A stretch of 64,000 nucleotides of DNA from positions 104,532,001 to 104,596,000 of the forward strand of contig NC_043003.1 in NCBI RefSeq assembly GCF_006345805.1, in the 5' to 3' direction. Every line of letters begins with the position of its first letter. Position 1 is the first letter of the stretch. The stretch comes from Octopus sinensis. Taxonomy: Eukaryota. Under the pieces are notes generated by a model that searched no databases, was not told the DNA's origin, and saw only the letters and a list, made by a program, of their open reading frames with translations. Below, one piece after another: positions 11,202 to 64,000 of this stretch. The position numbers were made by a program, and so were the translations under genes.

Positions 11202-11963
11202 TTAATAACAATCCAAAACGTTTTCATCGTCTTCTTCACTCATCTCTCCTTCATCACAATCAGCAAGTATGTCTTCGATTAAAGATAGTGGGTTCTTTAT
11301 GTATAGATCGCAGTTCATTTGACAATCCTGTAAATAACTACTTACATCAAGCTCGGAAAGCATTTCCACAAAAGCCACGCCTTTATGTTTTTTTGCAGAC
11401 CTTTCGCAAGAACGACAACAATCTTTACTACAACACTGGTACAAGTCCTGTGCATCTTCCATATTCACAGTTTTAACAAGACATTGCCCAATGTCCTCCA
11501 ACTTGATATGTTCAGCTAAAAATTTCTTCAAATTAACAAGGACACGGCCAGCTTCTTCTTGCACACTGTAGTCACAGTCTCGATAGGCTAAGAGTAAAGA
11601 ATCGATGCAGTTGATCTGCTGAAGTTTAGAGAGCATCTTAAGTATCTTACAATTTGTACAAGCTTTACATATTTCCCCTGACATGACTAACCCAGCTGCA
11701 TAGGATGGAACATTAGTTGTACTTTGTAATGTCGATTGCTCTTCAGAAATGATGATACTCTCCCAATATTCGATGCTAACCTTCTTCACTTCCCAATCCA
11801 AGTCATCCTGCAACACATTGTACATCGCTTTATGAAAAACTGCAAGTTGATTCCTGCCGTGCACAGTTTTTGACAATTTCAGAAGGAATTTTGCAGCTGC
11901 CCGCCGTGCAAAGGCTTCACTGTCCGTTTCAAGAATATTCATAATGTCTTGCTGAATATCAGC
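11202..11963 (-). CDS. BRAT1: BRAT1 exon 11 (terminal)
   Basis: tttttcag|GCT GAT ATT; ends EEDDENVLDCY-TAA. Confidence 0.9.
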   Translation of the reverse strand, partial: ADIQQDIMNILETDSEAFARRAAAKFLLKLSKTVHGRNQLAVFHKAMYNVLQDDLDWEVKKVSIEYWESIIISEEQSTLQSTTNVPSYAAGLVMSGEICKACTNCKILKMLSKLQQINCIDSLLLAYRDCDYSVQEEAGRVLVNLKKFLAEHIKLEDIGQCLVKTVNMEDAQDLYQCCSKDCCRSCERSAKKHKGVAFVEMLSELDVSSYLQDCQMNCDLYIKNPLSLIEDILADCDEGEMSEEDDENVLDCY

Positions 11964-12315
11964 CTGAAAAAATATTTTCACAAAATACTGGATTAGAAAA
12001 TGTTCGTTTGTTTTTTAAAATTTAATATTAATATTTTTAAAATTAAATATTAATAAGTGATGAACAGAAATGTAATTTGGAATATTTAGTTCCAGGAATG
12101 ATGAAACATACAAGTAAAGTACTGTTGTTAGTTCAGTTTAATCTGTCCTACACGTATAGTAAAATCTCATTTAGATATAAGCAGAGCAATAATTTGACAG
12201 AAATGCATTTAGACACAAGCAATTTTTAAATTCATTTTTATGTTTTATTTAATTCCTATGTTTTTTATTTTATGTTGATAAAATAAATATCAAGAAATAC
12301 CCTGGGTGAATTCAG

Positions 12316-12371
<56 letters not shown>

Positions 12372-12408
12372 ACCCATGCTAGCATGGAAAGCGGACGTTA
12401 AACGATGA

Positions 12409-12457
<49 letters not shown>

Positions 12458-24400: not shown

Positions 24401-25097
24401 TCCGTTCGTGTTCGTTGCCAGCCTCGCCTGGCCCCGTGCCGGTGACACGTAAAAGCACCGTCCGTTCGTGGCCGTTGGCCAGCTCTGTCTGGCCCCATGT
24501 CGGTGGCACGTAAAAGCACCATCCGTTCGTGGCCATTTGCCAGCTCTGTCTGGCCCCGTGTCGGTGGCACGTAAAAGCACCATCTGTCCGTGTCCGTTGC
24601 CAGCCTCGGCTGGCCCCCGTGCCGGTGACACGTAAAAGCACCGTCCGCTCGTGGCCGTTTGCCAGCTCTGTCTGGCAACCGTGTCGGTGGCACGTAAAAG
24701 CACCATCTGTTCGCGTCCGTTGCCAGCCTCGGCTGGCCCCCGTGCCGGTGACACGTAAAAGCACCATCCGTTCGTGGCCATTTGCCAGCCCTGTCTGGCC
24801 CCGTGTCGGTGGCACGTAAAAGCACCATCCGTTCGTGTCCGTTGCCAGCATCGCCTGGCCCCGTGCCGGTGACACGTAAAAGCACCATCCGTTCGTGGCC
24901 GTTCGCCAGCTCTGTCTGGCACCTGTGCAGGTGGAACATAAAAAACACCCACTACACTCGCGGAGTGGTTGGCGTTAGGAAGGGCATCCAGCCGTAGAAA
25001 CACTGCCAGATCTGACTGGGCCTGACGAAGCCTTCCAGCTTCACAGACCCCAGTTGACCCGTCCAACCCATGCTAGCATGGTAAACGGACGCTAAAC

Positions 25098-25134
<37 letters not shown>

Positions 25135-28100
25135 GCCCAATCACCAATTTGTACAGGTGGAAATGCAGGTCTTCATGCAAAATATGCCTTACCAATGCTA
25201 AGTTCAGTGGAATGCCTCTGAGCAGAGCAATTTGGAATCCATATCAAAGCTTGCTTGATGCGTTCCACATTTTCTGGGGTCTGTACCATTTGTGGTGCAC
25301 CCACCAGTCTACTATTCATTAGTGTATCTTGTGTATGAAGTGCATTCACTGAATGTGAGATTGTGTTATGGGTGGGAACTGCCTGACTTTGGTGAATGTT
25401 GAAGTGGCACTGAAACTCATGCTGAACTGCTGTGACAGACTTGTTATTCTTTACATAACTGTCGTAGGCAAACATGCAATGCTCTATTGTCCACAACACC
25501 ATTGCTTCACCTGAAAAAGAAAATGCTAAGAAACTACGGACTGAATGGTACCTGTTGGACATATGTCCCTCTCCCTGGGGCTGAGTAATAGCCATTTCAA
25601 AAACGTCCACCCTCTCTGTACAAAGAGAGATAAATAGGGAGATTAATAGATTAAGTATAGAACACAAAGATAGATCAAACATTGTTTTTACATTGCCCAT
25701 TCTTTACAGGAAATGGAAAGTGAGAAACTTCTAAAAATATTAAATAAAATGTAAAAAACACAAAATCATAATTTTGTTAAATAAATATGAACCCAAAATT
25801 GAAAGAATGATCAAGAATAAAAAAATCTTGATGCTTGGCATAGTAAAGACCAAAATACTAATTAGTAACTATACTTTTAGAGTACATATACATATATATG
25901 ATGGGCTTCTTTCAGTTTCTGTCTACCAAATTTACTCACAAGGTTATGGAGATCTTTTCGGTTTGAACGGCAGTTTTTTCTAGCGGTGTCATATAAAATT
26001 GTCACCCATAATTATGACCCTAGTATTGATCTATTGCATTTCAATCTGTTTTAGGGTTAGGGTTAGGGGTGGGGGGAAGGGTATCTTTTTTTCTTCACAA
26101 ATGTAAATAAACCCAATCTGTTTCTTAAACAAGGGACATATTCATAGGGCACAGAATGTTTTTCACCTCAATAGATGTCAGTGATTGGTTGATATTTTAG
26201 AAATTGAAGAAAAAAAACAACAAATATCTTACAAACTATAGAATTTTCTCAATAAAGCCAAGAGAAAAAGATGTTTTATAAACACATTCTACCAGTATAC
26301 AAAGTTTAAAATTTTTTAGTTACCTAGAAATTATGTTAAAAACTGCCATTCAAACCGAAAAGATCCGGTTTTGGTTCACTCCAGGCTACAGTAGAAGACA
26401 TTTGCCTGAACCCAAAATCATATGGCTGGGTTGCAAGCTTCCTACCACACAGCCACACCTGTGCCTAGCCATACCTGTACTCCCAACACACAATGACTAC
26501 TTTAAAGCTAGTTTCACTGTTAAAGCAAGGTTTTGTTAAGAATTCTCCCATTATATACAACTGTATTTTAGTTATCATCATAAACATGGAAAATAGTAAT
26601 TACATGCCAACTTTTGGAAGTAGTGCAGCATTTTAAGTAATAATTTGGTGGAATTGGAAATGACTTTGAAGAACTGGTAATATTCTGATGTCTGCAAGGA
26701 CTCTGTGTCAGTAGTCTTGTGAAAGAACTTCAAGAAACATGTTGTGGATAATTGGATTGTAGTTTTTATGATGTCTTTCTGAAAGAAAGATCACACGTAA
26801 ATTACATACATAACAGTACATATCACATTATTTACATTATATATATACACACACACACAGATATATACATATATATATAAATACACACACACACACACAC
26901 ACACATATATAAAGAGAGAGAGAGAATATATATTCCTGTATGTCTATGTGTATACAAAACTGTATAAAATGGATGTTATCCCTTATCTAGTGGTCAGATA
27001 TCTAGGGATAGACAAGTGGTTGGTGAGAGCAGAGCTGGGTGTATAAGTCATGTACAGGGATACAATCAGTAAGGTGAGGGTTGGCAATGAGTATAACGAA
27101 GAATTCCAGGTAGAAGTAGGGATTCATTAAGGATTAGTCCTCAGCCTCTTCTTGTTCATCATAGTCCTCCAGGCAATAACAGAGGAACTCAAGACAGGTT
27201 GCCCCTGGGAGCTCCTCTATGCTGACGACCTTGTTCTTATAGCTGAATCACTACCAGAACTAAGAGAAGTAGTTTCAGGTGTGAAAGAAAGATCTAGAAT
27301 CGAAGGCTAATACAAGTATAATTTTCATATTCGTAAACTCACGCCAGTAAGCTACCAGCAAAATATGAAGAATCTTTATTAGAAATCGTTTTTCGGAACC
27401 CTCCTATTTAAAGGACGAAATGTAACTCAATGTTTTCAGACACACACACACACACACATATATATGTGTATTTGTGAGTAGGTGGATGACTGGATTTAGT
27501 TAGGTAAGAAGACAGACAGCTAATAAACACGAGTATCATTTGCCACATCTTAGTTCATCAAAAATTAGGTAGTTATTACAAAAAATACAAAGAAATTACA
27601 TTATTCAAAACTATGACAATATATAAATGAACAATGAAACAAATTTAATTGAAACAAAGTTAATTGACAAATTCTTTTATTTGGATAGAAAAGTTAATGA
27701 TTTAAAGTAAGTTTATCTACCTGAAGTAATTTAGGGTCCACAAGTCTCTCCAGGCACTCAATGGTATTACACAGGCGTGCCTCACATTCTGGTGGGTTGA
27801 TGTCATTTAAAGATATTTGCTTGTTACAGCCAGTGGAGTTGGTGATATAATTAAAAAACTTCAATTTAGGTTGGTAGTATTTCTCCATCAATTCAGAAAA
27901 CAATGCATCATCGGGGTATGTAGATAGGAAACTGCTATTAAAAAACATTAATTCCATTGTGTAAGAGGTATAATATAACTCTGCATGCTTTGAATACAAC
28001 ACAATATAAAACAATATACCTTACACAGTCAAATGTTGCACTCGGAACACCTACATAACTCAAAACAATCAATACAGATTCGGGTTAGAAAAACACACAT

Positions 28101-34100: not shown

Positions 34101-37100
34101 ACTAAACACTGGCAAGCCAGAAGGCTACACCAGGCTCCAATCTGATCTGGCAACGTTTCTACAGCTGGATGCTCTTCCTAACGCCAATCACTCCAAGAGT
34201 GTAGTGGGTGCTTTTTATGTGCCACCGGCACGGGAGCCAGTCAGGCAGCATTGGCATTGACCATGTTTGGATGGTGCTTTTTACGTTCCACTGGCATGGG
34301 AGCCAGTCAAGGAGCGGGGGGACACTGGCATTGATCACATTCGGATGGTGCTTTTTATGTTCCACCGGCACGGGGAACCAGTTAGGCTGCACAGGCATTG
34401 GCTCACACTTGAATGGTGCTTACTATGTGCCACCAGCATTGGTACCAGTCAGGTGGCTGTGGCATCGGCCACGACTACGATTTCACTTCACTCAACAGGA
34501 CTTGTTTACAAAAATTATGCGATGTCAAGACAGGGTGACACACACACACACATGATGATCTTTGAATTTCTGTTTACCAAATCTATTCATAAGGCTTCAA
34601 TCATCCTGGTGCTAATACCAAAGACACTTGCCCAAAGTACCACATGGTAGGACTGGTTGGGAAGCAAGCTTCTCAACCATGCAATCACACCTGCACATAT
34701 GTATGTTACTGATATCTGATTTAATAAACTTTGCAAAGAAGCGCTGTTTCTAACTCAAATTATGTTAAGTAATGAAGAAGTGAGCACTAGTAGAAGATTA
34801 TGTGACTGGTGCTTTACTGAATTGCTTTTCACATTCACCTGTCTTTCTGCTCCCTTTTTTCTGTTATAACTTGTTTCAGTCATTGGACTGTGGCCATGTT
34901 GGGGCCCTGCCTTCATGGGTTTAGTCAATCAAACTGACCTCAGTTCTTATTAAATCTGGTACTTATTCTATCAGGTGCTTAATTTCTTCAATATTGTTCA
35001 GGACATAAGGTGTCATCTGTCATTACGTTCTGAGTTCAAATTCCACTGAGGTCGACTTTGCCTTCATCCTTTCGGGGTCGATAAATTAAGTAGCAGTTGT
35101 GTACTGGGCTCAATCTAATTGACTGGACCCTCCCAAAAAAATTTTGGACCATGTTCCAAGAGTAGAAAAGAATATTGCTCAGGACACTGACCTCCTAGAA
35201 ACTGTCCAGAGACGTGCATCTACCATACTCTGAATGCCTTGTTTCCCTGGGCATAGATACATCAAAGCTCTGACATTTGGCAACTGATTTGGTAAACCCC
35301 CACAAAATTATTAAATATTCTGCCAACAACCACCTTGAGTACCTTTTTGAGCTCCATGTGTCTAACACATGTGGGCATACCTACAAAGTCAGAAAACAGC
35401 ACAGCTACCAAGACTTTTGGAAACATTTTTCACACTCAGTGTTGTCGAAGCACGGAATAAGCCAAGACATTGCATCCTTTAAAACCCCCATGCTTCCTGA
35501 AATTCGCCAACACTACACCTGATATCCTTCCCTCCATACACGTGCACACATGTATATCATGACTCATACACTGTTCACTTCCCTGACATTTGTACATAAT
35601 TCTATGTACTTTTTCTGGTTGAAATACACCGAAAAATGGCGACACAGCAGTAAAAAAATCGTAAAAAATAGGGATTTTCGTAGGAAAAAAAATGAACCTT
35701 TTTGATGTAAATAATTTTTGGTTCTAACATGGCCCAATTTGAATTTTATCTTCTACGGGATGAAGAGCAAGCCTTCTTCTGTCATAATATCAATTTTGGT
35801 CAACTTGCGCCGCAGGGTCTTGGAGGAAATAGTGTTAGTTGAAGGCTACCAAACCCGCCATACACACAGACAACTTCAGCTTTATATATATATATATATA
35901 TATTAATCAAAATAAAAACATGATACCAAGGATTCAGCGGTACATGTGTTTCGGGCCTTTGTTGGACGGATTTATAACAATGCATAATGTACGTACGTAT
36001 ATACATACACGCACATGCGTCGGTTCGTGTACCCAACTACATGCGCGTTTTTCCATATATATCTGTATGTTTACACGAGAGTACATATGTATGCTTGTAT
36101 GCGTGTGGTTGCATATGCGTGCGTATATGTACGCGTGTATATGTGTGTATGTATCCATGCGTGTACGTATGTACATGCTGACCACTTGACACGTTACGAG
36201 GAACTAGATAAGCGGTTTAACCAGACAACTCTGTCTGGCCCCTGTGTCGGTGGCACGTAAAAGCACCATCTGTTCATGTCCGTTGCCAGCATCGCCTGGC
36301 CCCGTGCCGGTGACACGTAAAAGCACCATCCTTTCGTGGCCGTTTGCCAGCTCTGTCTGGCACCTGTGCGGGTGGCACGTAAAAAGCACCCACTACACTC
36401 ACGGAGTGGTTGGTGTTAGGAAGGGCATCCAGCCGTAGAAACACTGCCAGATCTGACTGGGCCTGACGAAGCCTTCCAGCTTCACAGACCCCAGTTGAAC
36501 CGTCCAACCCATGCTAGCATGGAAAGCGGACGCTAAATGATGATGATGATGTACACGTACCTTTGATGAGTTGTAGTGCACCTGAGCTCTATACACAACA
36601 ATTTCATTATCATTATTATTATATTATAAATTAAATATATAATATTTAATAAATGACACAAGCTACTTGAAAGATAACTGATAGATTCCTCATTAGATGA
36701 GTTACAAAGATACTTATGACAACACATATTAATAATCTTCCAGAAATAAATTCAAAAGCTAATAAGTAAAAAGGAAACTGGTCACAAATCTAAACTTTAA
36801 AAAAAATATTTTAGGTTCAGGCATAACTATTTGGTTAAGAACTTCACTTTGTAACCTAGGGGTTTCAGGTTTAGTCCCACTAGATGCCACCTTGAACCTC
36901 TTTACTATACCTCCAGGTTGACCAATGCTGCATGAGAGAATTTGGTAATTGGAGACTGTGAGGAAGCCTGTTTGTGTGTGTATTCATGTTGTGTTTCTCC
37001 TTTCTCCCTACCACTTGACAAATGGTTTGGCAAAAAAGATAAAATAAGTACCATACTTAAGATTAATAATAAGGGTGATTTAAAGTAAAGGCTATTTGCC

Positions 37101-42300: not shown

Positions 42301-45300
42301 CCAATACAATGTAAACGGCACCCATGAATCATAGTCATGGTCACTGCTGGTGCCACATAAATGGTGTGTGTGTTTGGAGTGCTGATTTCTGACATTGGCC
42401 TAGTATTGATGGAGTGTGCTGTGATTGAGTACAGGTAACTGAATATGAGGAAGAACTAGAACTCAGATTTGGAAAGAAAATTCAAGTTTTTATTGTTGGA
42501 TTTGAAGTGTGTGTAGGCTGAGAAGACCAGAAGTTGAGGTAGGGGTCAGTAGAAATGTAAAGGTTATCAATGTTGATGTTCAGAAAGGTAACTCAAATGC
42601 TGAAGATGATAAATTCAAAAGCAGGTGGAAAAGTGTTGATGATGGTGATAAGCCTAAGATCTGCACTAAGTGCCAGTCTGATTTGGCATGGTTTCTATGG
42701 CTGGATGCCCTTCCTAAAGCCAACCAGTCTATGAGTGTAATGGGTGATTTTACATGCCACCAACATGGGTGCCATTTACATGGCACCGGCAGTGATCCTG
42801 ACTATGATTCATGGGTGCCGTTTACATTGTATTGGCAGCAACCATGACTACAATCCGTGGGTATCATTTACGCGGCACTAGCAGTGACCATGACTACGAT
42901 TCATGGATACCTATTTCTTTACTACCCACAAGGGGCTAAACACGGAGAGGACAAGCAAGGACAGACAAACGGATTAAGTCGATTATATCGACCCCAGTGC
43001 GTAACTGGTACTTATTTAATCGACCCCAAAAGGATGAAAGGCAAAGTCAACCTCGGCGGAATTTGAACTCAGAACATAGCGGCAGACGAAGTACCTATTT
43101 CTTTACTACCCACAAGGGGCTATACACAGAGAGGACAAGCAAGGACAGACAAACAGATTAAGTCGATTATTTCGACCCCAGTGCGTAACTGGTACTTATT
43201 TAATCGACCCCGAAAGGATGAAAGGCAAAGTTGACCTTGGCGGAATTTGAACTCAGAACGGAACGACAGACGAAATACTGCTAAGCATTTCGCCCGGCGT
43301 GCTAACGTTTCTGCCATGGTACTGGCAACAGCCATGTACCATGGTTCACGTGTGCTACTTACATCGCACTGGCAATGGTCAAAACTATGATTTCACTTGG
43401 CCTGACGAGTTTTCTATGTACAGCATATTTTGTCATCATCTCCATGGTGAGGCCCAACATTTGAAGAAATCTAACCCATACAAGCACAGAAGTTAAAATG
43501 GTGAGGGTGACATAATTGTCTTACAGGAGTAAATATCAAAATTTTGCTATTCATTTCTTTAATATCATTAACATACACTCAGATTCTTATAACCCTGTTA
43601 AACATCAAATAACCATATTCAGCCTCTGAATTAGATATGTCTTTTTGAACATAAAAGAGCACAATATTTATCTAATTATCTTCTTCTCCCCTCAAACCTT
43701 GACCATTATGCTATTGTTGCTTGACCATCATCCCTACCAATAGTTACAAAATATATTTTAGCTATTCTTTATATTCCACAGGGACGTCTTTTGGCCAGCC
43801 AAGCTGCAGCAGCACATGATGTGGACACCTCTAGCTCTCTACAACCAGCTACAAAGGTAGGTTGGCTTAGCTACGTATTTGATATTAAGGAATTACGCGT
43901 ATATGCGTGAAGGTAAATATTATTTTCTTTTAAATGTATATTTGAAATTAATGAAATTTGATTTTTATGTGGTTTGATATGGAGAATGAGTTTTTTTCCA
44001 TAACATTTTGAGGTACTTCACTGTCAATTGATAGTTCAACAACTAGTGTACCATATATAGTGGTAGCTCTCTCGTTGTACTGTGAATCTGCTACCTCATT
44101 AACAATACATTACTAATACTCAAATTTATAAACGAGAGACTATCTGCTTTTGATGCTTAAAATTTCACATTACAATCTCTTGTATCCTTTGCCTGAAAAT
44201 CCATAACTTCAAGCTTATGGATCTTTGTCAGTGAACAGGTCGCAGTCTTAAAGCAAGGAAAATATTTTGACAAATTAAACTTAAATGTTGAAGTGAATGA
44301 AACGGTTTTTGTGTGTTTCTTAAATGGCTTACAAACACCTTCCACGCCGCAATTGTTTTCGTTCCAGCACACGATCTCAGATCAAATCACTTCCTATGCA
44401 GGTACATCTCCGTTATTAATAAGTTTTTTGTAAATATACTTCTTTGTTGCTGTGAAATGGTTTCTGTGTTGAAGCTCACTTAAAATATTCCAGTGTGGTG
44501 AAAGACAACAAATTGGACTCATATAAATATTATGGCCAATTTTATCATTGTTACTTTGTTATAAGTAAACAAAATTTGTTACTGTAGTTTCATTTGCATA
44601 ACATTGAATAAAATTGCATCCAAAGATTTGGTTTCCTTTTTAGAACCAGAAATTACTTTGATTCTGTTGTTGAACTTCTGTAAGGACAGTGATCTTGTGG
44701 CACACACTACCAATCTATATCACATCCAAAGACAAAACCTAAAATGATGATGATGATACGTGTGTGTGTGTGTGTGCATACCTATAATATATATATACCC
44801 CACATTTTATTGTTTTATTTTATTTGTGATTGCTAAATGTTTGCTGTCTTTCAGTTGAGGATTTGCAACCAAATTTACTTCATGCCGAGCCTAGCTATAT
44901 TTTCATGTAAAGAATTCATTTTAATTCGTATACAGTATGGTGTTATAGTTAATTCCTGTCACTTATTTATTGCCAACCATATACCCCTATCAGAAAAAGG
45001 ACAAAATTCCATAAGTTGTGTTTACTGCTAGTGAAAGAATACAGGAGTATGTAAGATCGATAACATTAGAACTTGTGCATATTCTATGTAGTATTGAAAC
45101 CTTGATTCTCCACTTTGAGAAAAATTAAATTTTTTTCATCTCCAGAATTTATTGATTTAAAGTTAACAAAGTTTGTTGTTACTGCTTAAATTTTCAGGTT
45201 TCCAAGTTAGGAAATGGTATAACTGTGGCATCTTTGGAGAATTACTCTCCTATATCGCATGTGTCTATTGTGGTTAAAGCTGGCTCCAGGTATGAATCAG

Positions 45301-48143
45301 GAGATAACTTAGGAATTAGTCACCTCTTGAGAAATATGGCTGGAATGGTAAGTAACTTCCAAAAGACTTTTTATCCTATTTTCTACACTGTAGTCTATGG
45401 TGTTGTACTTGTTATACTGTGGTGTATTGTGTTGTGACATTTACAATGTATGGTGCTGTGATATATATGCACTGTGGTGTGTGGTGTCATGATATCGGCA
45501 CTGGTATAGACATTGTGGTGTTTGGTATTCTTTTGGGTGGATAGATGCGGGACTATTCCAAAATCTCTCGTGGAAGCATCATCCAACCAAAGTACAAATA
45601 TATGGGAAACTACCACCTGTATCATCTCTTGTGAAAGGTAGGAGAGTCCAGTTTGCTGGACATTGTTGTAGAGCTGAAATCGAGGTAATTTCTACTCTTC
45701 TACTCTGGAAGCCCTCTACTCGCAATGCCAGAGAGCGCATACTCTCCTACCCTGATGTAATCTCGAGGGATACAGGCATCCAACAACAGGACCTCCGTAA
45801 TGCTATGATGGACCGTGAAGTCTGGCATAGCATTGTTAAATTCCATTGTCTTGACCACGGTCGAACAATGATGATGATGATGATTCCAATATTGAGTCCT
45901 GATTGAATCTCATTAATCATCCTCTACCGCTTAGTTTCTTATTGATGTTTTCTCTCTTTGAGAATTGTCCTTACATTCCTGTTGTAGCCTCTTGCACCTA
46001 GCTACACAATGAAGCAGTTAAGAAACATTGCTGTTCTTAGCTTGTTCCAAGCATATTCTTCACCATTTTCTTCTTTCTTCTCTTTGACAGGGAACAAAGG
46101 AGAGCACAGCATTTGGCTTGACTAGAACCGTGCAGCAATCTGGTGCCAATTACACGTAAGTTTGGTCTTTGTCTTCACTTCTCTCCTAACACATCTCTCA
46201 TCCATAAAATTGTTTTATATATATATATACTAGCACTATGACCTGGCGTTGCTGGATCATAGTGCTTAGTGCATGCATATACAGCTGTGTGCGTGCACAC
46301 ATACACACAAGTACTGTCCAAATCTCCGACCAATCACACAGCCAGCTGGCATTCAATTGGTGTATCAAGTTTCGGAGATTTTGATTAGGTTTTGGACAGA
46401 AAATTCACAAAAAAGTCACTTCTATTGATTTTTTAATGGCTTTGCGGGGTGACTGGGGAAATGTAAAGATGTGCACGACCACCCTTGGACGGTTTAGAAT
46501 GACCATAGAAAGTGCAAGCCCTCCAACTGAAAAATTGTGGATTTGTATAAAGGACACAGACAGACAGACATTTTGCCTTTTATATATATACTAGCAGTAT
46601 CGCCCGGCGTTGCTTGGGTTTGTTTCGACCCGCTGGAATTGTAATTTTGAAAAGTAAAAATTTTGTGAACATTTTTCTGGTCGAAATATACCGAAAAGTG
46701 GCGACACAGCAGTGAAATAATCGTAAAAAATAGGGATTTTCATAGAAAAAAGCAGCTTTTTGATGTAAATAATTTTTGGTGTTAACATGGTCCGATTTGA
46801 ATTTTATGTTCTATGGAAGGAAGAGCAACCCTTCTTCTATCATACTCTCAATTTTGGTCAACTTGCGCCGCAGGGTCTCGGAGGAGATAGTGTTAGTTGA
46901 AGGTTACCAAACGTGGCGCACACAGACAACTTCAGCTTTATATAGAGACTAGCAGTATCGCCCGGCGTTGCTCGGGTTTGTAAGGGAAATAACTATATAA
47001 GCATTTCTAGAGAGTTATAGCCAAAAAATAGCAAAAAATGCATTAAAAAAGGAAAAAATATGATGGTAAATTTTTTTTTAAATCGTTGACTCATCGTAGA
47101 CATTTTTAGAGAGTTACTTCCCTTATATAATAGCCAAAAAATGCATTAAAATGGAAAAAAAACGATGGTAAATTTTTTTTAAATCGTAGACTCATGTAGA
47201 CGCTTTCTTAGCCATTTCTGTTTTGGTGTCTTCAAGCCATGAAGTCGTTGTTCTAAAAGAACACTGGTCTCCTTGACAACGCATTACGACGTTGATTTCC
47301 TTACACTCCCTTCCCCACAGGTGCAGGTGTGAGCGTGGATGCCAACTCCGCCGCCATCGACACACGAAAAATTATGCATTAAAATGGAATAAAAAATGAT
47401 GTTAAATTATTTTTAAATCGTAGACTCATCGTAGACGCGCGCTAATATTCAGACGGGCTCGATATGAATCACGACTATAAGCTACCCGAATTTGGTTAAA
47501 CTGCACCGCAAAATGTGGGAGTAGTTATGAATCTAAATCGAAGGGGACAGACACTCACACAACTACAGTTTTATATATATAGATATACATAGCGCAGTAG
47601 TGGTGAGATGTGACAGCAAAGAAAAGCATACATTCACTCTCTGCATGCAATTAGACTCGGAAAGTTCGTGAGGAACCCATTGACCCAATTTGCTGACTTT
47701 TCCGATAGCACACAGGTCTCAATGAATGGTTGAATGACCAAATCCAAGCTTCTCTGCTAGTTCCTCAACAGTTACGATGAGATTTTGTTCCACCAGGGTT
47801 TTCAGGATGTCCTTGTCGAGTTCTACAGATCTTTCAGGATGAGGCTCGTCTTCTAGGCTGTAGTTTATGGCTCGGGATTTCTGGAACCACCATTGACACT
47901 GCCTTACGCTTATTGTCCAATCCCCATATACTGCATTAATATTTCTTGTACTTTGCACACATTTATATTCTGTTATTCTTTTATATGTTTCAGCCTTGAG
48001 GTTGTGGCCATGCTGGATCATGTGTGTGTGTGTGTGTGTCTATCTGTCTGTCTGTATGTATATATGTATATGTATGTGTGTGAACAATAATATTTTCAAC
48101 AGATGTGTTGCAAATGTATCTGATTGTTCTCAAGCTTCAATAC

Positions 48144-48174
<31 letters not shown>

Positions 48175-51100
48175 ATATGTATGTATGTATGTATGTGTGT
48201 GTGTGTATGTATGTATGTATGTATGTATGAGTGTTTACTTTATTACTAACACAAGCCACTACGGTTATTTAATGTAAAGTCTTCCTCAAATCACTCTCTC
48301 TCTCGCTATTTACTCTCTTCCAAGAGCATTTTCACTCACTCTTAGCTCTTAGCTTCCCATACATTTTACTCATGTATCTATCAGCGTCATAGACAGAATA
48401 CTTTCAGTTTAGTCTTCCTCAAATCACTCTGTCGCTATTTACTTTCATTTTATTCGTTGCACACTGTGTGTGTGCGTTTGCGTGTGGTGTAAACCAGACT
48501 AAGAAAAGCATTTGACACACACACCAGAATGTGAGTTTTCTGTAAATTTTGCTTAATTGGAGTTTAAATTTTAAAAACTGGACCTGGCATGACGCGATGC
48601 ATTGTACTCTTAAAAATGCTAGGTAAATTGTAATTGAAGAAATCCTATATTGTAGATTTCTATAACTCCCAAAGGGAGGCAGATAAAATCTGCCTTTTAT
48701 AATAAGAGATAACACACACACATTAATACACATACATAGACACGCACACACATGTATGTATGGATGTATATATGTACATCTGTCCACTTCTTGCAATATT
48801 TTTATCCTTCACTTCCTACACACACACACACACTTACACACACACACAGACACACACACGTGCACGCACACACACACCTTCTTAGCTTACAATTTCTTTC
48901 TGTCAACAATTGACAACAGAAGTACGCTCGCCAATTAATACTACCAAAATTTAACAACAGAAAGTAAATTAAAAACCAATTTACCTTTTCTGTATTATTA
49001 TGGCAATCCGACCGTCGGTGTGTTTTTGCAAATGTGTTCGAATGAGAAGTGAGTTGTGTTTGGCGCCTTTTTTACTAATAACAAACACACACATATGTGT
49101 GTGTTTGAGTGTTTGTGTTTGTCACTGTCATATGTGTATGTGTATGCGTGTGTGTGAGGAATGGCAAACCAGATAGATAGCGCGCGAAGTTGTTTTGAAG
49201 TTCGCGCTCTGCTTGTGTGTGTGTGTGCGTGCTTTAGGTACACAGCACAACATTACTCTCTCTGTCTCTTTACACACACTAACAAAAGCACTTCACTTAC
49301 ACACCACGCTTTCTGTGTCGCACATCCCATCAAACACACACACTCACACATGTACATCAATGCTTTCGGAGTGAAATGTTAAAATATTGAGTTTTCTCGA
49401 ATTTTGTCTTAATTGGGGGTGAAATTGAAAGAAATTTTGTATGGCATGACCGAATGGAAGTACTTGTAAAAATTATAGGTAAACTGTAATTGAAGAAATT
49501 GTGTGAGGAGTAAATCGTTATGTATTTATTTGTTTCTGTTTGCTGTTTTTTTTTGTTTGAGTAGTGGTTTAAGGTACACTTCTCTCGTTTTATAGAAATA
49601 GTTTCACTTTAATCGTTGCACACTTGCAAAGAGAAAGGAGTAGAAATTAGGGTGATAGCGTGAGTGAAGCAGATCGCTCCGTTTTTGTGTGTGTGCGTGT
49701 GCTGTAGCCCACACTAAGAAAAGCACTTGACTTACACACCACAATGTGAGTTTTCTCTAAATTTTGCTTAATTGGGGTTGAAATTTTAAAAACCGGACCT
49801 GGCACGACCCGATGCATTCTACTCTTAAAAATGCTAGGTAAATTGTAATTGAAGAAATCCTATATTGTAGATTTCTATAAGAGACAAAGGGAGGCAGATA
49901 AAATCTGCCTTTTATAATAAGAGATAGAGATATATTCAAACAGATAGAACCCTCTCTAATTTACTCACTGCCCACAGTTTTTCCTGCAGACATCACTCTA
50001 CAGATGTTTAAGCTTAAGATCAGCCTCGCTTGTCAAAGGGGTCCTGTGAAAGTGTCGTGTCTACTTTCCCTCTTTCTCTGGCTGTCTTATTAAAAGTACA
50101 CAAGAGATATACAAATGAAAAATATATAGGACTATGTTGCTGAATCAAATTCTAAATGTTGGCTATTATCTTGTGAGCAGTAAAACAGTATTGAGATAAC
50201 TGAAGAGATTTCTGTTGCTAGATTTTCTAACCGTTTGGACACTGAAGATATTACGGTAATTACAATAGTTTTGAATTGATGAAAAAATTAATTCAGTCAT
50301 CATCATCATTGTTTAATGTCCGCTTTCCATGCTAGCATGGGTCGGATGATTTTGACTGAGAGCTTGCGAACCAGATGGCTGCACCAGGCTCCAATCTTGA
50401 TCTGGCAGAGTTTCTACAGCTGGATGCCCTTCCTAATTGCCAATCACTCCAAGAGTGTAGTATATTCTTCAGTATATGAAGAATATGCTCTCCCAGCTGG
50501 AACAGTGTACCATGGACTACATTATCCAATGTATCATTTCTTGAGACACTAGAGAATGATTTGAAAGCGAGATTTCACTCTTTCTAGCAAGTTGAGCAAC
50601 CACATAGAGACCCTCTCGTCAGCTTGTTCAGTCTAGTCACATGACACATTTTTTAACTTTTACAATAGGTCTGAATATTTTAAATGATGAAGTTATGATG
50701 GTTGTAATGTTGTTGAAAATTGGCTGTGATGAAAGGGAAGATGTGTGTGTGTGCATAACACGCACACACACACTGACACCACAATATAGGTGGTTATAGT
50801 GGAGTGTGTTGTACGTCTTGTCATGACAGAGTGCTATTGAGATGAAAGATGACTGTGTTATTGACAAAATAATAATGATAGTGATTGGTGAGGTGGCCGA
50901 GTGGTTAAGGCGATGGACTGCTAATCCATTGGGGCCTCCCCGCCTGAGTTCGAATCTTATGCTCGTCGATTACATTTTCTTCTTTCGCTTGCGAAGACCT
51001 GTCGAGGCAAGTGAAATCAAAATCAATCAAAAATCAATGGAAATTGTAGTTGTGATACCAGTGCCGGTTGCACGTAAAAGAACCATCCGAACGTGGCCGT

Positions 51101-54100
51101 TGCCAGCGCCGCCTCGACTGGCCTCCATGGCGATGGTACGTAAAAGGCACCAACCGATTGTGGCCATTGCCAGCCTTGCCTGGCACCTGTGATGGTGACA
51201 CGTAAAAAGCACCCACTACACTCCACCGAGTGGTTGGCGTTAGGAAGGGCATCCAGCTGTAGAAACACTGCCAGATCAGACTGGAGCCTGGCGCAGCCTC
51301 CTGGCTTCTCAGACCCCAGTCGAACCGTCCAACCCATGCTAGCATGGAAAGCGGACGTTAAACGATGATGATGATGATTGGGTTGAGGTTTACGGTAACA
51401 GCGGTGGTGGAAGTTACAGCTACTTGTGAAGTGGTTGGAAAGAGGCTGATGTACATGGGAATGGGAGCCTAGCTAAAAGGCAAGTGATGGGAAGGGATTG
51501 GGATTTGATGATCAACAAAAGAAGGGACAATAATAAAGGTGGTGGGTGTGACAGCAGTGGTTCAGGTTTTTTTCTATCAGTAATTTGTCTTGTTTATTGT
51601 GTTTTTCAGCTGTACAACCTCACGAGAATTTGTCACTTATCAAATTGATTGTCTTCGTGATGAACTGTAAGTATAACTTTAACCCTACCGTTCACTTCAT
51701 CTCCTTGATAATCCTTTTTCAGCAAAGAAACACATAAAAGCACCAACCGATCATGGCCGTTGCCAGCCTCCCCTGGCACGTAAAAAACACCCACTACATT
51801 CACGGAGTGGTTGGCGTTAGGAAGGGCATCCAGCTGTAGAAACACTACCAGATCAGACTGGAGCCTGGTGCAGTCTCCATGGCTTCCATACCCTGGTCGA
51901 ACCGTCCAACCCATGCTAGCATGGAAAGCGGACGTTAAATGATGATGATAAAATCTATTTAAGTCCCTTGGCGACTGGGAGGTTCTTTTAGGTCCTTGAA
52001 GATATTTGAAGTCACTGAGGTTCTTGTCAACTAATATTTTTAGTTGCCTCGTTGATTTTAGCCACTCATAGACCAGTGTGGTTACTTTCCTGTTGACCGA
52101 TGCCAAAAGACGTTTATCTGTTATTGAAATGTTATATAACACAAACACACACACGCTCCATTATATACATTGTGATAGTGGAGTGTTTTGCCTATATTGG
52201 TTATAAAAGAGTTGATGAGGCTCAGTGGATAGAGAACTACATGAAGCTTAATATTTAACTGTTCTACTTTCAAATCTTACCAGTATTGACTTTGCCTTTT
52301 ATCACTCTGGGTTTGATAAATGAAGTAATTGTAGTTATAATAAGATTGATTAAATGTATGCTTTTACTAAAAAAAGAGAAAGAGAATCTTTCTGTCTCTA
52401 GTGAAGAACATATTTCTACTTAATTGTTAGGATTCAGTGGGCAATTTTGTTAAACATGAGAAGGTTTACTGTTACTAATAAATCCTATGAAACTCCAACT
52501 GCTGTGGTTCTTTTCACTTGTTCTTGTTGATGGAAATCACTTACCTTAGGTTCCTAATAATTTTTTCACTTTTTATTTTAGTGATAATGTGATAGGATTG
52601 GTGAAAAGTGCAGTGACCGTACCAGCTTTCAAACCCTGGGAGATAAAGGAGGCAGCTGCCAGTATGACACTTGACAAGGCTGTCCTGAAGACACAACTTC
52701 CTCTTCGTAAGTACAATATGGTAATTAGTTTAATCACTTGCGAAGACCTGTTGAGGCAAGTGAAATCGAAATCGATCAAAAATCAATGGAAATTGCAGTT
52801 GTGATACCAGTGCCGGTGGCACGTAAAAGAACCATCTGAACGTGGTCGCTGCCAGCGCTGCCTTGACTGGCCTCCGTGCCGGTGGAACGTAAAAAGCACC
52901 CACTACACTCATGGATTGGTTGGCATTAGGAAAGGCAGCCAGCTGTAGAAACACTGCCAGATCAGACTGGGCCTGGTGCAGCCTCCTGGCTTCCCACACC
53001 CCGGTCGAACCGTCCAACCCATGCTAGCATGGAAAGCAGATGTTAAACGATGATTTATATTACATATAAATCTTGGGCAATGATTTGGTATGAATGTGGG
53101 GCTGTTTATTAGTCTAATTAACAGTGTTGCCATATTGAGGGAAATTGTTGCACGCTGGACTAAATTTTTTCTGAAGTATTTAATCTCATATTTATCAATA
53201 GAGGGTTTCAAATTTCAGTTGAAATAATGGAATGTGAGTTGGAGAGAACCCTGTCAGTGCACTCAGCAATTGAACATTGTGACTGGAAACTTTATTCAAG
53301 AGGTGAGAGACTGATAGAACCCATAAACAGGCAACTTTGGGAGGAGGTTCTCCTTCCACTTGTGGTCAAGTTTTTTGATGATGTCCAGTGCAAAATCCTC
53401 AAGGACCAGTGGCCAATGAGGTATGACAGAAAAGAGTGTGTTGATGGTAGATCTAGCCGTCAGGAGACAAAAATGTCTCCATAAATGAACAGGAGAAAGA
53501 ACTAAAGTGAAACCCCAAAACATTACTGTTAGAAAGTAGAGAAGAGAAAATTGATACACTGAGCTTTATGATAGATATTACCAAGAATAAGGGATATCAA
53601 ATTTCCCAAAATGTTTGGAAAGAGAAATTAAGAAAACATTATTTGCCACACTGAGTTCAAATCGTTCAAAATTGTTTATTTTTCATTCCTCAGAAGTCAG
53701 TAAAGTGAGAACTAGTAATATATTATATTGAATTAATTCAATTAATTGTATTTTATACTTACTAAAATAAGTCCTTATTTTCATTTCTAATAAAACTAGA
53801 AGCAGTTTTTTTTTTAATTCAGTGTGTTCCACTTTCATTTCCATCTCTGTCCATTTACCTCTTGCCTTTCATACTCTTGCAAACTTCCCTTCATACTCAT
53901 CCTGTCCAATCCTTTGTACCACTTCTATATTCACCTTCCTGAAACTTGAGGGTGCACTCTGACACCTCTTCTGCAACAAAAAAACCTGTTCTTATCATTC
54001 TATTGCACTTTAACCTCATCATTATCTGGCATAAAAAGTTTAATACAACATCCTCCTCAGTTGAGGAGTCTCGTCTTGAGAGTTACTTGATGGCCTCACT

Positions 54101-57100
54101 TGTGCTAGGGTATCTTAAGAAGCACTTAGTACTGTGGTTGGTATTGGAAGGGCATCCAATTGTAGAAACAATGTGAAAGCAGGCATTAGGGCTTGTGAAG
54201 TCCTCTAGTTCCTCCTGTCAAACCAGCCAACCCATACCAGCATGGAGCACAAACATTAAATGCTGAGGATAATAATCTTTGTTATTGAGTTATAAAAAGA
54301 TTTGTATCTGCTTTGTATGTATCAAGGACCTGTTTAAAAACCAGTGTTTAGTGGTTTCATGACATTAAGTGAATGTGAAATAAATCTTCTTTTGGGTAGG
54401 AAGACACCATTTTATTGCAAGAAACCTTACTAGATATTTTGGTTCCTTCCTAATCTTAACATTTAAGGAATTTTTTGGTGAGGTTGGGACCTGGCCAGCA
54501 GGAAGCGGCTTTACCTATATCCTTTTGCAGGTTGTCCAAGATTGGTGAGGTTAATTCAGTTAATAATGCCCTTGAAGGTAAACTGAGGCAGTTTAGAATG
54601 TCCTTCTTAGAAACAATATAACACTTGCAATAAATTTCGATTTATGACATATCAACAAGTAATCCATAATTTTATTCACTCAGTTATCAATCATCTAGAA
54701 TTCAAAATTCTTCAGTTTTGTGGCTGTCATAATTGTAATTTAGTCTTACTTTGTAGTTATATGGAAATATAGGTTCAAACCTGGCAATAATGCAAATGAC
54801 AAACTCTATTGGGTTGACTCTGTGGCTCAGTTGTTATTTTGCTTGAAGTCAGCCCTAATCTAGCGGACCTATGATCAAAAATGTTCCAGCTCTGACCATC
54901 CCATCTTTAATTTAGACTAAAGTAACCAACATGCAAGATGGTAGGTTGTAAGTTGAAGGATATTTTACAACTATTTCTAAAATGTTATGCAACTGTAAAG
55001 GGCTACCTTGTGGGCTAGTTTCAATCTCTCGTTAAACTCAACCAATTTACTATGTAAAAGCTGCAGAAAAAGCTTAGACATTGCAACTTACTTCTTCTCT
55101 CTCTCCTTCTCCACATTTATGTTACTCAAAAGAAACAAGTGTGTTCTTTTACTGATATTGGCCATTGAATCGTAGCCTTGATATTTAAAACTATAATCAA
55201 GCCTGTCTTTGATTGCAGAGGTGTTTGAGTTACTTCACTACGCAGCTTTTAGGAGTACTTTGGGTAACTCCATTTATGCATCTGACAGCATGATTGGCAG
55301 GTTTTCTCCTGAGCTTGTAAGTTTTTTAAAAATTTTCTTTCTTTCTTTCTCTCCAACACTTTAATGAATATATGCTTATAGCTGGTTTTTGTCTTCTTAT
55401 TTAAAAGCGCTTATGATTTTTAACTCTTTTTGTGAGAAGATTTCAAACAACACTAGACTGCTTGTATGTTTTAATATACTTCTTATGAAGTCAAAATTCT
55501 GTCCAAAGACTCGAGTGTTGATCTGTTGATAAAAAGAAAATGCATCTAATAAAATTAATGAAAGTTATAAGTTTCCTGTTCTCATAGCCCATAAACTCAC
55601 CTTTTTACAAATTAGAGAAATTTGCAGACGTGACTGTTCTGTGAAGAAATTCACTTCACAACTTTAGGTTCAGTCCCACTGTGCCACTTCTTGGCAAACC
55701 TGTGTCTTATTAGGGAATAGGGAATTTGGTAGACAGAAAGCAGAAGCTCATCTTGTGTATGTACATGCACAGGTGTCTGTTTACAATATACTTAGCTAAT
55801 ATTACAAACATGGTAGTATTTGTTGTCAGGAAATGTCGACAAATCATTTGTTTGCTTTGCTCTTTTGAATTCTGCTGGAGTGAAAAATCCCTTCCTTGAA
55901 AACAGGCAAAGGTTGGCAAGAGGAATGTCATATGGCCACAAAAAAACCTTGCCTCCATTTAAGCCATGCTATTGTGGAAAAAAACAGATGTTAAATACAT
56001 GACTAAAGATTTTTCTGTAAAACTGTGCTAAATTTTCTGTCTTGTAAAAATCTCATGTGTGTAATAGATTTGGGATCTTTTTAGAGTCTTTTTGTGAGAT
56101 CACCAAAAGAGCTCATTAGTGATTGTACAGTTAAGTATTTGTAGCAACTTTGAGGTTTTTAAGTACATTTTGTCTTGAGAAGGTGAGGCATGTACTTGTT
56201 TCTTTGATCTGTGCAGTGGTTGTGTTTGTGCAATTGTTTTCTTGGCAAGAACCACATTAACTAAAGAAACCTTCCTTATTTAAGATATTAGGTTGTAATC
56301 TGAAAATGGTTTCATTGCTATTGTAGCAAATCCAGTGAAGGCATAGGGGCACATTTTTCGGCTCTCATATAAATGTTGTTGATGTGGTGATGGTATTAAT
56401 GTCTTAACTCCAGCACTACTTTAGCAGATCTTATGGAGGTAACCTGCCAAACAACTGAAAGTGACTCACAGCCATAGGAGTTGTCCTCCCTCAACTGTTT
56501 ATCAACAACCATGTTGTACACTCTAACTTGTCTGATGGTAGTGATGATGATGGTGTTAATGAGAAGTTTTGGTCAGACATTTGAGAGTAACTATGTAGTC
56601 CAGATATGTCATTCTTCAGTTCCAATCAAGAACCATTTCTATGATCAGCCATCATTTTCGAGAGGGACTCATTCTTTGACTTCTTTTCATGTGTTTACCA
56701 GTTGCATCAGTATGTAGCAGACCACTACACAGCAGACCGTATGGCAGTTGTTGGCATTGGAGTTGACCATGAACATCTTCAACACTTGGTTGGCCAGTTC
56801 CAGTGCAGTCCCTCGTCTGGCATTTCTGATGCAAAGGCAAAATATTGTGGCGGTAAGTAGTGTTAATAATAGTTTCAGATTTTGACACAAGACAAGCATG
56901 TTTTAGTGGGTGGGCAATAAGCAATAACAGTGATCCCCCGTGCATGACTGGTACTATTTTATCGACTCCAACAAGATAAAAACCAATGTTGACATTAGCG
57001 TAATGGGAACTCGAGAAGTAATTCAGAGTGGCCAGTGACATGCATTTGAACAACACAGGACATGAAGTACCGTACAACATAAATTCTTTATTTATTGTCT

Positions 57101-61717: not shown

Positions 61718-62768
61718 ATGTATCATCTACTTTCCATGCTAGCAGGGTTTGGACGATTTGACTGAGGACTGGCGAACCTGATGTCTGCACCAGGCTCCAA
61801 TCTGATCTGGTAGAGTTTCTACAGCTGGATTCCCTTCCTAACGCCAACCACTCTGAGAGTGTAGTGGGTGCTTTTATGTACCACTGGCACGAGGGCCAGT
61901 CTGGCGGTACTGGCAACGGCCATGCTCAAATGGTGTTTTTTATGTGCCACCTGCACAGGAACCAGGCCAGCGGCACTTGCAATGACCTCGCTCAAATGTT
62001 TTTTCCCGTGCCAGTAAGGCAATGCTGGTAACGATCACGCTCGAATGGTGCTTTTTATGTGCCACCGGCACAGAAGCCAGTTGCTCTGGCAACAATCACG
62101 CTTGTATGGTACTCTTAGTGCTTCACCAGCATGGATGTCAGTTATCGAATTTGATTTCGATTTCACTTGCCTCAACGGGTCTTTGCAAGCAGAGTTTAGT
62201 GTCCAATGAAAGAAAGGTACGCATAAGTGGGCTGGTTACACCCCTGGCATAGGCCACAAGGTTATGGTCTCACTTGGCTTGCTGGGTCTTCTCAAGCACA
62301 GCATATTTCCAGAGGTCCCGGTCACTAGTCATTGCCTCGGTGAGGCCTAATGTTCGAAGGTCATGCTTCACCACTTCATCCCAGGTCTTCCTGGGTCTAC
62401 CTCTTCCACAGGTTCCCTCAACCACTGGGGTGTGGAACTTTTTCACACAGCTATCCTCATCCATTCTCACCACATGACCATACCAGCACAGTCGTCTCTC
62501 TTGCACACCACATCTGATGCTTCTTAGGTCCAACATTTCTCTCAAGATACTTACACTCTGTCGAGTATGCACACTGACATTACATATCCATTGGATCATA
62601 CTGGATTCATTCTTTGTGAGCTTACGCATGTCCTCAGCAGTCTCGGCCCATGTTTCACTGCCATGTAGCATGGCTGTTCGTACACTTGCGTCATACATTC
62701 TACCTTTTACTCTGAACAAGTGGCCCTTTGTCACTAGCAGAGGTAAGAGCTCTCTGAACTTTGCCCAG
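61718..62768 (-). mobile_element. RTE-clade LINE 3' portion with a largely open ORF remnant and complete 3'UTR
   Basis: ORF 62270..62887: KFRELLPLL, AMLHGSETW, RRLCWYGHVVRMD, GRPRKTW. Confidence 0.92.
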
Positions 62769-64000
62769 ACAATGAAAATTTTGGAAGGGAAAATATAAGT
62801 AATGAGTGGAAATCGAACTGGTGTGTTAGATAATAAGGCATTAAAACAAGATGATTCTCCCCAGACGATATATATATATGCACACACACACTTGGTGAAT
62901 GAGTAATTAATATTTAGAAGGGCATCATCATCACCATTTTACATCCATTTCATCATACTTGCACCGGTTTGATGGCTTTTCCTTGCAACTGTCTCCACTT
63001 GTCATAATCATTCGGCATCTTTGTGAGATTCAATATCGGCAGATCATCTTTCACCACTCCTACCTTGTCCTTGACCCAAGTGTCTGCTACCATATGTCGT
63101 ACATGCTCGTACTTTCAAGTCTCTTCTCTTGTACACCATATCTGATTCTTTTTTAAACTCAGTTTTCTGCATTTTCTCTCGTTTGTGCCTTGTTGTTCAT
63201 GCACACTAATGTTACCGGAAGTTGTGTCTTCCCTTTATCTCCATCTTTTGCACAACTTTCAATGACTGTGTTTTGCCACAACATCCTACCTCATTATGTC
63301 ATATACTCTTCACTTTGAAAGAGAATCTGTTTCCAGTGGCAGCAACATAACATCTCCCTAAACTTCTCACTCTGTTCATTATGCTTTTGGCACACCCAAC
63401 TCAAAGAAGCTATCATCTACTTCTATGGAGACTTCCTAACAGCCCAAAGACCTTATTTCACCAGTGATCTCACTGTTTATTGCTCCTTGCATCTGCTACA
63501 TACTTAGTTTTCCTTCTCAATCAGCTTGCTTATAATTCCACTACGCCTTTGGAATTCCTACCTGCTCTTTTACTTCATATTGTAGCGTGTAGCCATTTTC
63601 AAATGGTAGTGCCAATTTGTGGTCGCTGGCAATATGACGTAATCTCGTATTGCCGAAGAAATATGATTGTCGTTTTTCCATTGGTTAATATAACTGCTCA
63701 TATAGAAATTCTAAGAATTAGTAAAGAATATTTGTATGGGATTTCGATTCTTTTAAGTCAAGTTGAGCAGTTAAAAAAACCCTGGATTTTAGGAAAAACT
63801 TTAGTGTTTGTTGGATGTAACTAAACTCCATGACACTCACTCCTTTGAGACATTGGTGATTTTTTTATGCCATGTCCATGAAAAATCCAACAAGACTTGT
63901 TTGAATTGTTGAGATTTATAATAGCTAGAATGAGGAATTAGATAGCTAAAATATCAAGTCGTAATTCTCTACGACAAAAATTACTTTTCTTCAAAATGTA

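Follow-up and report, generated by a model that had tools for sequence, protein, structure and literature searches.

Within an intron of a UQCRC2-like gene of Octopus sinensis, a tRNA-Ser(GCT) sequence is followed after 18–19 nt, on the same strand, by the 3′ end of a long interspersed nuclear element (LINE), and the pair is bracketed by an imperfect direct repeat. We analyzed this composite in a 64-kb window, the whole stretch of 64,000 nucleotides at positions 104,532,001 to 104,596,000 of the forward strand of contig NC_043003.1 (NCBI RefSeq assembly GCF_006345805.1); all positions below count from the first letter of the window. The window is AT-rich (61% A+T), and the pair lies in it sense to the UQCRC2-like gene and upstream of the exon at 51591–51667. 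It has the architecture of a tRNA-derived short interspersed nuclear element (SINE), an RNA polymerase III (Pol III) head joined to a LINE tail, with no sign of amplification. We tentatively favor, at slightly less than an even chance, an origin in which a pre-tRNA/LINE chimeric cDNA was inserted in one target-primed reverse-transcription event. The composite consists of the following parts (ORF, open reading frame; UTR, untranslated region; TRF, Tandem Repeats Finder):

50882–50894, plus strand: upstream copy of the direct repeat, TGATTGGTGAGGT, from local alignment; its last 8 nt are tRNA positions 1–8
50887–50968, plus strand: tRNA-Ser(GCT), 82 nt, class II with a long variable arm, from ARAGORN and Rfam
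50969–50986, plus strand: trailer or spacer ATTACATTTTCTTCTTTC, carrying the sole Pol III stop, from a T-run scan
50987–51378, plus strand: LINE-derived 3′ end, 392 nt, from alignment to window copies
50987–51013, plus strand: start of the LINE part, the last ~9 codons of ORF2 and the stop, from alignments and translations
51014–51057, plus strand: AATCA-type microsatellite and subfamily-specific 3′UTR segment, from TRF and alignment with the window copies at 21372 and 52734
51058–51213, plus strand: ~2.5 tandem 3′UTR units of ~61–66 nt, from self-BLAST and TRF
51214–51363, plus strand: unique 3′ domain of the LINE UTR, from alignments; it includes the conserved terminal segment
51325–51357, plus strand: conserved terminal segment CCGTCC-AA-CCCATG-CTAG-CATGG-AAAG-CGGACG, common to short-UTR LINEs
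51364–51378, plus strand: (GAT)5 terminal repeat of the LINE, from TRF
51375–51389, plus strand: downstream copy of the direct repeat, TGATTGGGTTGAGGT, from local alignment; its first 4 nt lie within the GAT tail

The first-pass annotation had placed a tRNA-Ser(GCT) with intact A and B boxes at 50887–50968, and two programs uphold this assignment. ARAGORN reports a single tRNA in the window, Ser(GCT) at 50886–50969 (+), and Rfam model RF00005 matches 50887–50968 with a modest 39.2 bits against a gathering score of 29, with no further tRNA-like match in the window even at E ≤ 1. Read from the sequence, the A box TGGCCGAGTGG is intact, the invariant B-box bases GTTCGAATC are present, and the long variable arm GGGGCCTCCCC has a 4-bp stem. 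The marks of a tRNA gene are in place, namely a score above the curated threshold, both boxes and a downstream terminator of at least four T residues, and the 3′ end lacks an encoded CCA. The cloverleaf is imperfect, with mismatches at 7–66 (G/G) and 49–65 (C/T) and G·U pairs at 2–71, 3–70 and 51–63, and the unconstrained minimum-free-energy fold of the region is not a cloverleaf (z = −1.07). Because two of the changes are stem-breaking transversions, the tRNA is not obviously a maintained gene. Positions 1–4 read GGTG in place of the usual GACG of Ser-GCT, a departure pointed out earlier that an indirect comparison reproduces: in public data, more than 100 spurious ORFs over tRNA-Ser genes have the reading DEVAEWLRRWTANPLGSPRVSSNLILVD or nearly so, and their 'DEVAEW...' back-translates to GAY GAR, whereas the focal tRNA reads GEVAEWLRRWTANPLGPPRLSSNLMLVD and its ORF 'GEVAEW'. 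By this measure the focal tRNA differs from the widespread Ser-GCT pattern at a minimum of ~5–7 of 82 nt, including GAC to GGT at positions 1–3, an indirect estimate whose reference is a set of translated tRNA-Ser ORFs and may not be the octopus's own.

After the tRNA, the trailer reads ATTACATTTT. Within 50969–51566, four or more consecutive T residues occur just once, as the TTTT at 50975–50978 that begins 7 nt past the tRNA. This agrees with the earlier proposal of a sole Pol III stop before the LINE end, and the next such run lies at 51567–51573. The last 8–9 nt of the spacer may be tRNA flank, LINE sequence or filler. The window copy at 21372 has TCTTTC[A/G]C in common with the focal spacer, and the spacer has no significant similarity to the upstream segment of the LINE UTR (p 0.25–0.65); with the same p values we ruled out that the spacer plus tRNA 3′ half is homologous to the LINE UTR stretch preceding GCTTGCG.

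Homology to the LINE is clear from 50987 onward, 8 nt past the T run, and may begin near 50980 if a short match to the copy at 21372 is real. Alignments and TRF both recover what had been described from the letters alone, a same-strand LINE 3′ end that stands 19 nt past the tRNA and closes in (GAT)5. Its character as a LINE 3′ end is seen in the continuity with ORF2 in longer copies, in the short tandem-repeat terminus and in the conserved terminal segment. The focal copy diverges by 6.5% from its own consensus, and its ORF2 ends in ..AKTCRGK before the stop, compared with ..REKTRQDQ or ..LEKTQQAK in ORF-bearing copies. The window copy at 52734 starts at the equivalent of 50988, the copy at 21372 at 50994 (or perhaps a few bases before that, given a 5-nt deletion) and an O. 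vulgaris copy (L001, 4119) at ~50995; both window copies are free of a tRNA and have unrelated upstream flanks, and what lies upstream in ORF-bearing copies does not significantly resemble either the focal spacer or the tRNA. Judged by its start, the focal LINE part is an ordinary 'long' representative of a short 3′-end subfamily, the 5′ ends of which cluster near the ORF stop. The 5′ ends of the longest tRNA-less copies lie within ~8 nt of one another, just before the LINE stop codon, and this clustering, in a small sample, hints at a discrete short non-autonomous 3′-end element over random 5′ truncation.

Alignment of TGATTGG--TGAGGT with TGATTGGGTTGAGGT gives 13/13 identical aligned bases and one 2-nt gap (local score 10–12.5), which bears out the description of an imperfect direct repeat that brackets the pair and overlaps the tRNA 5′ end. 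Simulation gave p = 0.002–0.005 under three nulls: random window pairs, the fixed tail with a random 5′ side, and the fixed tRNA start and GAT tail with random flanks. Nowhere in the 3′ flank is there a better match to the tRNA 5′ region than this repeat. It ends in GAGGT, which is tRNA positions 4–8, and the non-canonical bases of the tRNA 5′ end (positions 2–3) sit only inside it. A search of the literature for the repeat sequence as a string found no match. Two other sources for the flanks were set aside: the 3′ flank as a decayed second tRNA, from a long target-site duplication (TSD) or a tandem duplication, has its best match 160 nt off and marginal (p 0.015–0.09), and the 5′ flank as the tail of an older retroposon matches no repeat.

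From these parts, their order and the repeat we infer a single event and each of the steps that follow. A 493-nt block, ~50890 to 51378, would have been inserted as a chimeric cDNA. The LINE reverse transcriptase would have used the (GAT)n terminus of a short LINE 3′-end RNA for priming and copied this RNA as far as its 5′ end, close to the stop codon of the ORF. It would then have jumped to the oligo-U 3′ terminus of a nascent pre-tRNA-Ser(GCT), which was without CCA and kept its trailer ATTACAUUUU, and copied the pre-tRNA too. The target top strand, ending in ...TGAGGT, would have annealed to the cDNA at tRNA positions 4–8 (GAGGT) and primed the second strand. Such an insertion would leave a 15-nt TSD, with the upstream copy supplying tRNA positions 1–3 (GGT for GAC). 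The target before insertion would have been a single ...GTGATTGGGTTGAGGTTTACGG..., with neither tRNA nor LINE, and the product would be a dead-on-arrival retro-pseudogene that has decayed neutrally since.

Several observations argue for one event. The repeat brackets the tRNA and LINE together, and no comparable repeat surrounds the LINE part alone (score 4, the null level). Its ending in GAGGT is the geometry expected if microhomology primed the second strand. As expected of a nascent Pol III transcript, the tRNA has no CCA and its trailer closes with a T run; the gap from T run to LINE is 8 nt, or 1–2 nt if the start near 50980 is real. Chance same-strand adjacency has a probability of ~0.4% per tRNA, given 24 copies per 64 kb. 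The difference of the tRNA at ~5–7 of 82 positions, an indirect figure, fits an age equal to that of the LINE part at 6.5%. The locus also presents the layout of a small-RNA chimera, a sense small RNA 5′ of a 5′-truncated LINE 3′ part. L1-mediated chimeras with Pol III RNAs, tRNA included, are documented (bioRxiv 10.1101/2025.02.02.635956), and template switching is the accepted route to new SINEs (PMC5729268, PMC4758252). Rough Bayesian bookkeeping yields odds of ~0.7:1 to 8:1 for one event.

The first-pass annotation had offered a chimeric retrocopy or a chance juxtaposition, and both survive the analysis, with a repeat that is rare and a family without TSDs. In the second explanation, a resident tRNA-Ser(GCT) with its own TTTT, either a mutated pseudogene or a weak isodecoder, was joined later by an ordinary copy of the abundant short LINE 3′ end that landed 19 nt downstream on the same strand, and the repeat is coincidental; we regard this as a serious contender, somewhat below an even chance. 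It calls for no unusual biochemistry, and a terminator 7 nt past the tRNA is what a tRNA gene normally has. The family is dense, with 24 copies in 64 kb that make up ~10% of the window. The LINE part starts where tRNA-less copies start, at the same base as the copy at 52734 and within 7 nt of that at 21372, and plain insertion by a resident tRNA fits this equally well. None of ~30 other copies (23 in the window and others in 20 kb of an O. vulgaris chromosome and four short contigs) carries a tRNA head. Family copies normally lack TSDs, as does the LINE part here: ~20 other copies show no recognizable TSD, which makes a 15-nt TSD exceptional for this LINE machinery. One other copy, at 2305–2521, has a chance flank repeat that is equally strong or, through a locally repeated motif, an even stronger pseudo-TSD.

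Further points weigh against a single event. It needs a 5-nt microhomology plus three target bases that pair with positions 70–72 (~1/16), a later 2-nt indel in one repeat copy, and some source for the 8–9 nt that separate TTTT from clear LINE homology. The tRNA divergence used to compare ages is indirect, with a reference other than the canonical octopus tRNA-Ser(GCT), and known tRNA/L1 chimeras are mostly antisense tRNA halves (bioRxiv 10.1101/2025.02.02.635956), whereas the focal tRNA is full-length and sense. An independent juxtaposition, for its part, requires two coincidences, adjacency at ~0.4% and a repeat at 0.2–0.5% placed exactly at the tRNA start and LINE end. Both are softened because the locus was picked for its odd adjacency, a choice that enriches rare coincidences. 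It also requires two substitutions at tRNA positions 2–3 that happen to improve the repeat, and has to accommodate the two stem-breaking transversions in a resident tRNA. Compared with an ordinary tRNA gene or pseudogene beside a retroposon, the composite is alike in everything except the bracketing repeat (p ~0.002–0.005), and its tRNA 5′ end departs from the canonical form only inside that repeat.

Other known systems resemble the composite. The U6/L1, other small-RNA/L1 and tRNA/L1 chimeras (bioRxiv 10.1101/2025.02.02.635956) likewise have a Pol III RNA 5′ of a truncated LINE 3′ part, one repeat that flanks the whole, and a small RNA that apparently ends at a U run. Unlike in those chimeras, the partner here is not L1 but a (GAT)n-tailed octopus LINE, which normally makes no TSD; human tRNA/L1 chimeras carry mostly antisense halves, and the full-length, sense arrangement of the octopus locus would have arisen in one event only under the reading we favor.

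SINEs derived from tRNA and having RTE-type tails, Bov-tA for example, were reportedly described by Malik and Eickbush in 1998, and PMC9115989 cites them. SINEs of the Bov-tA and TguSINE1 type share with the composite a tRNA head with A and B boxes on the 3′ end of a resident LINE, and a short tandem-repeat terminus. The focal locus differs from them in having no evidence of amplification and a Pol III terminator between head and tail, and its head is a complete tRNA with trailer, whereas SINE heads are a remodelled tRNA-related region. TguSINE1 of passerines represents the birth of a SINE de novo (PMC5729268).

If the single event is true, the locus would be a clean example, outside mammals and outside L1, of template switching that joined a full-length sense pre-tRNA to a LINE tail. 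Such a step has long been proposed as the founding event of tRNA-SINEs, and here it would involve a type of LINE that partners many SINEs. It would also mean that this LINE can occasionally make long TSDs. If the two parts arrived independently, the pair is what a repeat family occupying ~1/10 of the region would ordinarily produce. Neither reading comes with evidence that the element is of a new kind or currently active.

The composite could instead be a daughter of a rare, young tRNA-Ser/LINE-tail SINE whose master locus is read by Pol III through the weak T4 and whose RNA is retroposed by LINE machinery, which we consider improbable. The tRNA-SINE architecture, with A and B boxes and the tail of the partner LINE, and the bracketing repeat would fit such a daughter, and octopus is known for many SINE families, with 893 'unclassified SINE' families reported in O. 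vulgaris (PMC13282606). Set against this, the junction has no second copy in the 64 kb or in ~46 kb of related DNA, a TTTT stands between head and tail, and a read-through Pol III RNA would end at 51567–51573 and not at the GAT tail. Searched against 1.84 billion representative proteins, the junction-spanning ORF (50842–51192) yielded, among the matches listed, tRNA-Ser look-alikes alone, and an exact look-up was empty. All 150 listed matches of this ORF cover the tRNA part, and among those read none extends into the LINE part; one candidate for a junction-spanning protein (P0136) was rejected, its remainder being unrelated to the LINE part.

Within the DNA searched, the composite is thus a solitary arrangement and not an amplified SINE: it joins a tRNA-related head to a partner-LINE tail, and it has neither dispersed copies with the same junction in that DNA, which is a part of the genome, nor a stop-free unit from head to tail. 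The T4 stop may leak and is not decisive. No sign of present activity emerges: two stem pairs are broken, the T4 stop is in place, read-through would run to 51567 and no daughters were seen. The label 'SINE-birth intermediate' given in the first-pass annotation finds no support where it implies activity, with no daughters in the DNA searched, a T4 between head and tail and a damaged tRNA. A true intermediate, a one-event chimera that Pol III still reads through the weak T4 and that has at least a few daughters elsewhere in the octopus genome, has in our estimate a slim chance; if real, it would allow the origin of tRNA-SINEs by template switching to be observed directly in a mollusc.

Integration targeted to tRNA genes is the weakest explanation. 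Elements of this habit exist, such as the Dictyostelium TRE3 elements, which integrate just downstream of Pol III genes, and a LINE with a preference for sites just 3′ of Pol III genes would account for the adjacency alone; the 23 other window copies and those in the O. vulgaris sequence L001 adjoin no tRNA, and the flanks of the copies have no motif in common, which leaves this explanation with hardly any probability.

The family that supplied the LINE part is abundant in the window. Self-BLAST finds 23 other places that match 50987–51378 at 68–100% identity, for a family total of ~6.4 kb, and most copies are 5′-truncated at scattered points. A LINE ORF2 C-terminus lies upstream of the same sequence at 62270–62887 (−) and ~23893–24228 (+) of the window, in the O. 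vulgaris sequence L001 and in an ENA sequence (L002), with the pattern ..RLRWYGHVVRM..GRGRPRKTW..DLWKYAVREKTRQDQ before the stop and the UTR directly after it. The closest named protein to the ORF at 62270–62887 (−) is 'Hypothetical predicted protein [Octopus vulgaris]', at 86% identity. The C-terminal ORF fragments have no match above threshold in Pfam, and patterns from the LINE 5′ region, mid-region and tail gave zero matches in metagenome, bacterial and archaeal genome and viral contigs, the tail included. The LINE plausibly belongs to the RTE clade, an assignment that fits the published description of octopus RTE-2_OV, whose ~600-nt 3′UTR is mostly microsatellite starting at the ORF end (Petrosino et al. 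2022, PMC9115989). The window LINE likewise has a long 3′UTR that opens with a microsatellite at the ORF end, a likeness drawn from that description and not from sequence.

Among the individual copies, that at 23893–25133 (+) is a 5′-truncated LINE with the ORF2 end at 24228, an AATCA microsatellite, a 61-bp × 10.9 minisatellite at 24276–24943, a unique tail and (GAT)12; the minisatellite is built from the unit present ~2.5 times in the focal copy. Two LINE 3′ ends lie side by side at 61730–62887 (−) and ~62900–63300 (−). The first has a 163-aa ORF2 C-terminus (62270–62887) and a long UTR (62269–61730), with the ORF-end segment duplicated ~105 nt downstream, and the second is a short-UTR relative in a more degraded state, ending in GATGATGATG. 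At the copy with the pseudo-TSD (2305–2650, −), one occurrence of the motif GGTAGTCCTAGAAAAT precedes the LINE tail and two follow it, giving a pseudo-TSD of 31 nt, and 46 nt of A-rich sequence separates it from the LINE 5′ end.

The last ~50 nt of the family, CCGTCC-AA-CCCATG-CTAG-CATGG-AAAG-CGGACG-TTAAAC-(GAT)n, are common to two related LINEs, L004 and L005, in which the ORF runs into the tail. In the form CCGTCC-AA-CCCATG-NNNN-CATGG-AAAG-CGGACG, the terminal segment occurs at 51325–51357 of the window, 712–758 of L004 and 654–699 of L005. It is conserved in LINEs with long and with short UTRs, lying within the ORF in the short-UTR type, and a two-part stem is predicted in it, with no covariation or compensatory changes seen. 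In L004 (GCA_014845345.1, JACSEG010030677.1), the ORF end and GAT-type tail of a related LINE abut a GC-rich, bacterial-looking coding sequence, and this contig is possibly host-contaminated or chimeric in the deposited assembly.

The host gene lies in part within the window on the plus strand, and its UQCRC2-like exons were located by tblastn and translation, with a human UQCRC2 sequence as the query:

45189–45345, plus strand: UQCRC2-like exon
51591–51667, plus strand: next UQCRC2-like exon (..CTTSREFVTYQIDCLRDEL), ~200 nt 3′ of the tRNA/LINE pair
~52573–52686, plus strand: UQCRC2-like exon
~55217–55316, plus strand: UQCRC2-like exon
56699–56857, plus strand: UQCRC2-like exon

A long sense LINE-tail copy at 52734–53054 (+) starts ~48 nt past the splice donor that follows the exon ending near 52686. 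Rfam also matches mir-297 and mir-3149 below threshold at 12306–12434, 26842–26965, 36095–36179 and 48020–48777; these matches fall in low-complexity (TA)n/(TG)n DNA and are not credible as microRNA genes. The UQCRC2 exons, used as a protein query for the orthologous site, gave a top match of only 36% identity. Upstream of UQCRC2, a MATH/TRAF-domain ORF lies at 4721–5248 (+) and a BRAT1-like last exon at 11202–11981 (−). The BRAT1/MATH neighborhood is also present in a distant ENA contig (L006) with BRAT1 at 41% identity, and this contig, which carries no tRNA, ends before UQCRC2. A Logan contig of 1 kb carries a relative of the BRAT1-like exon at 84% identity.

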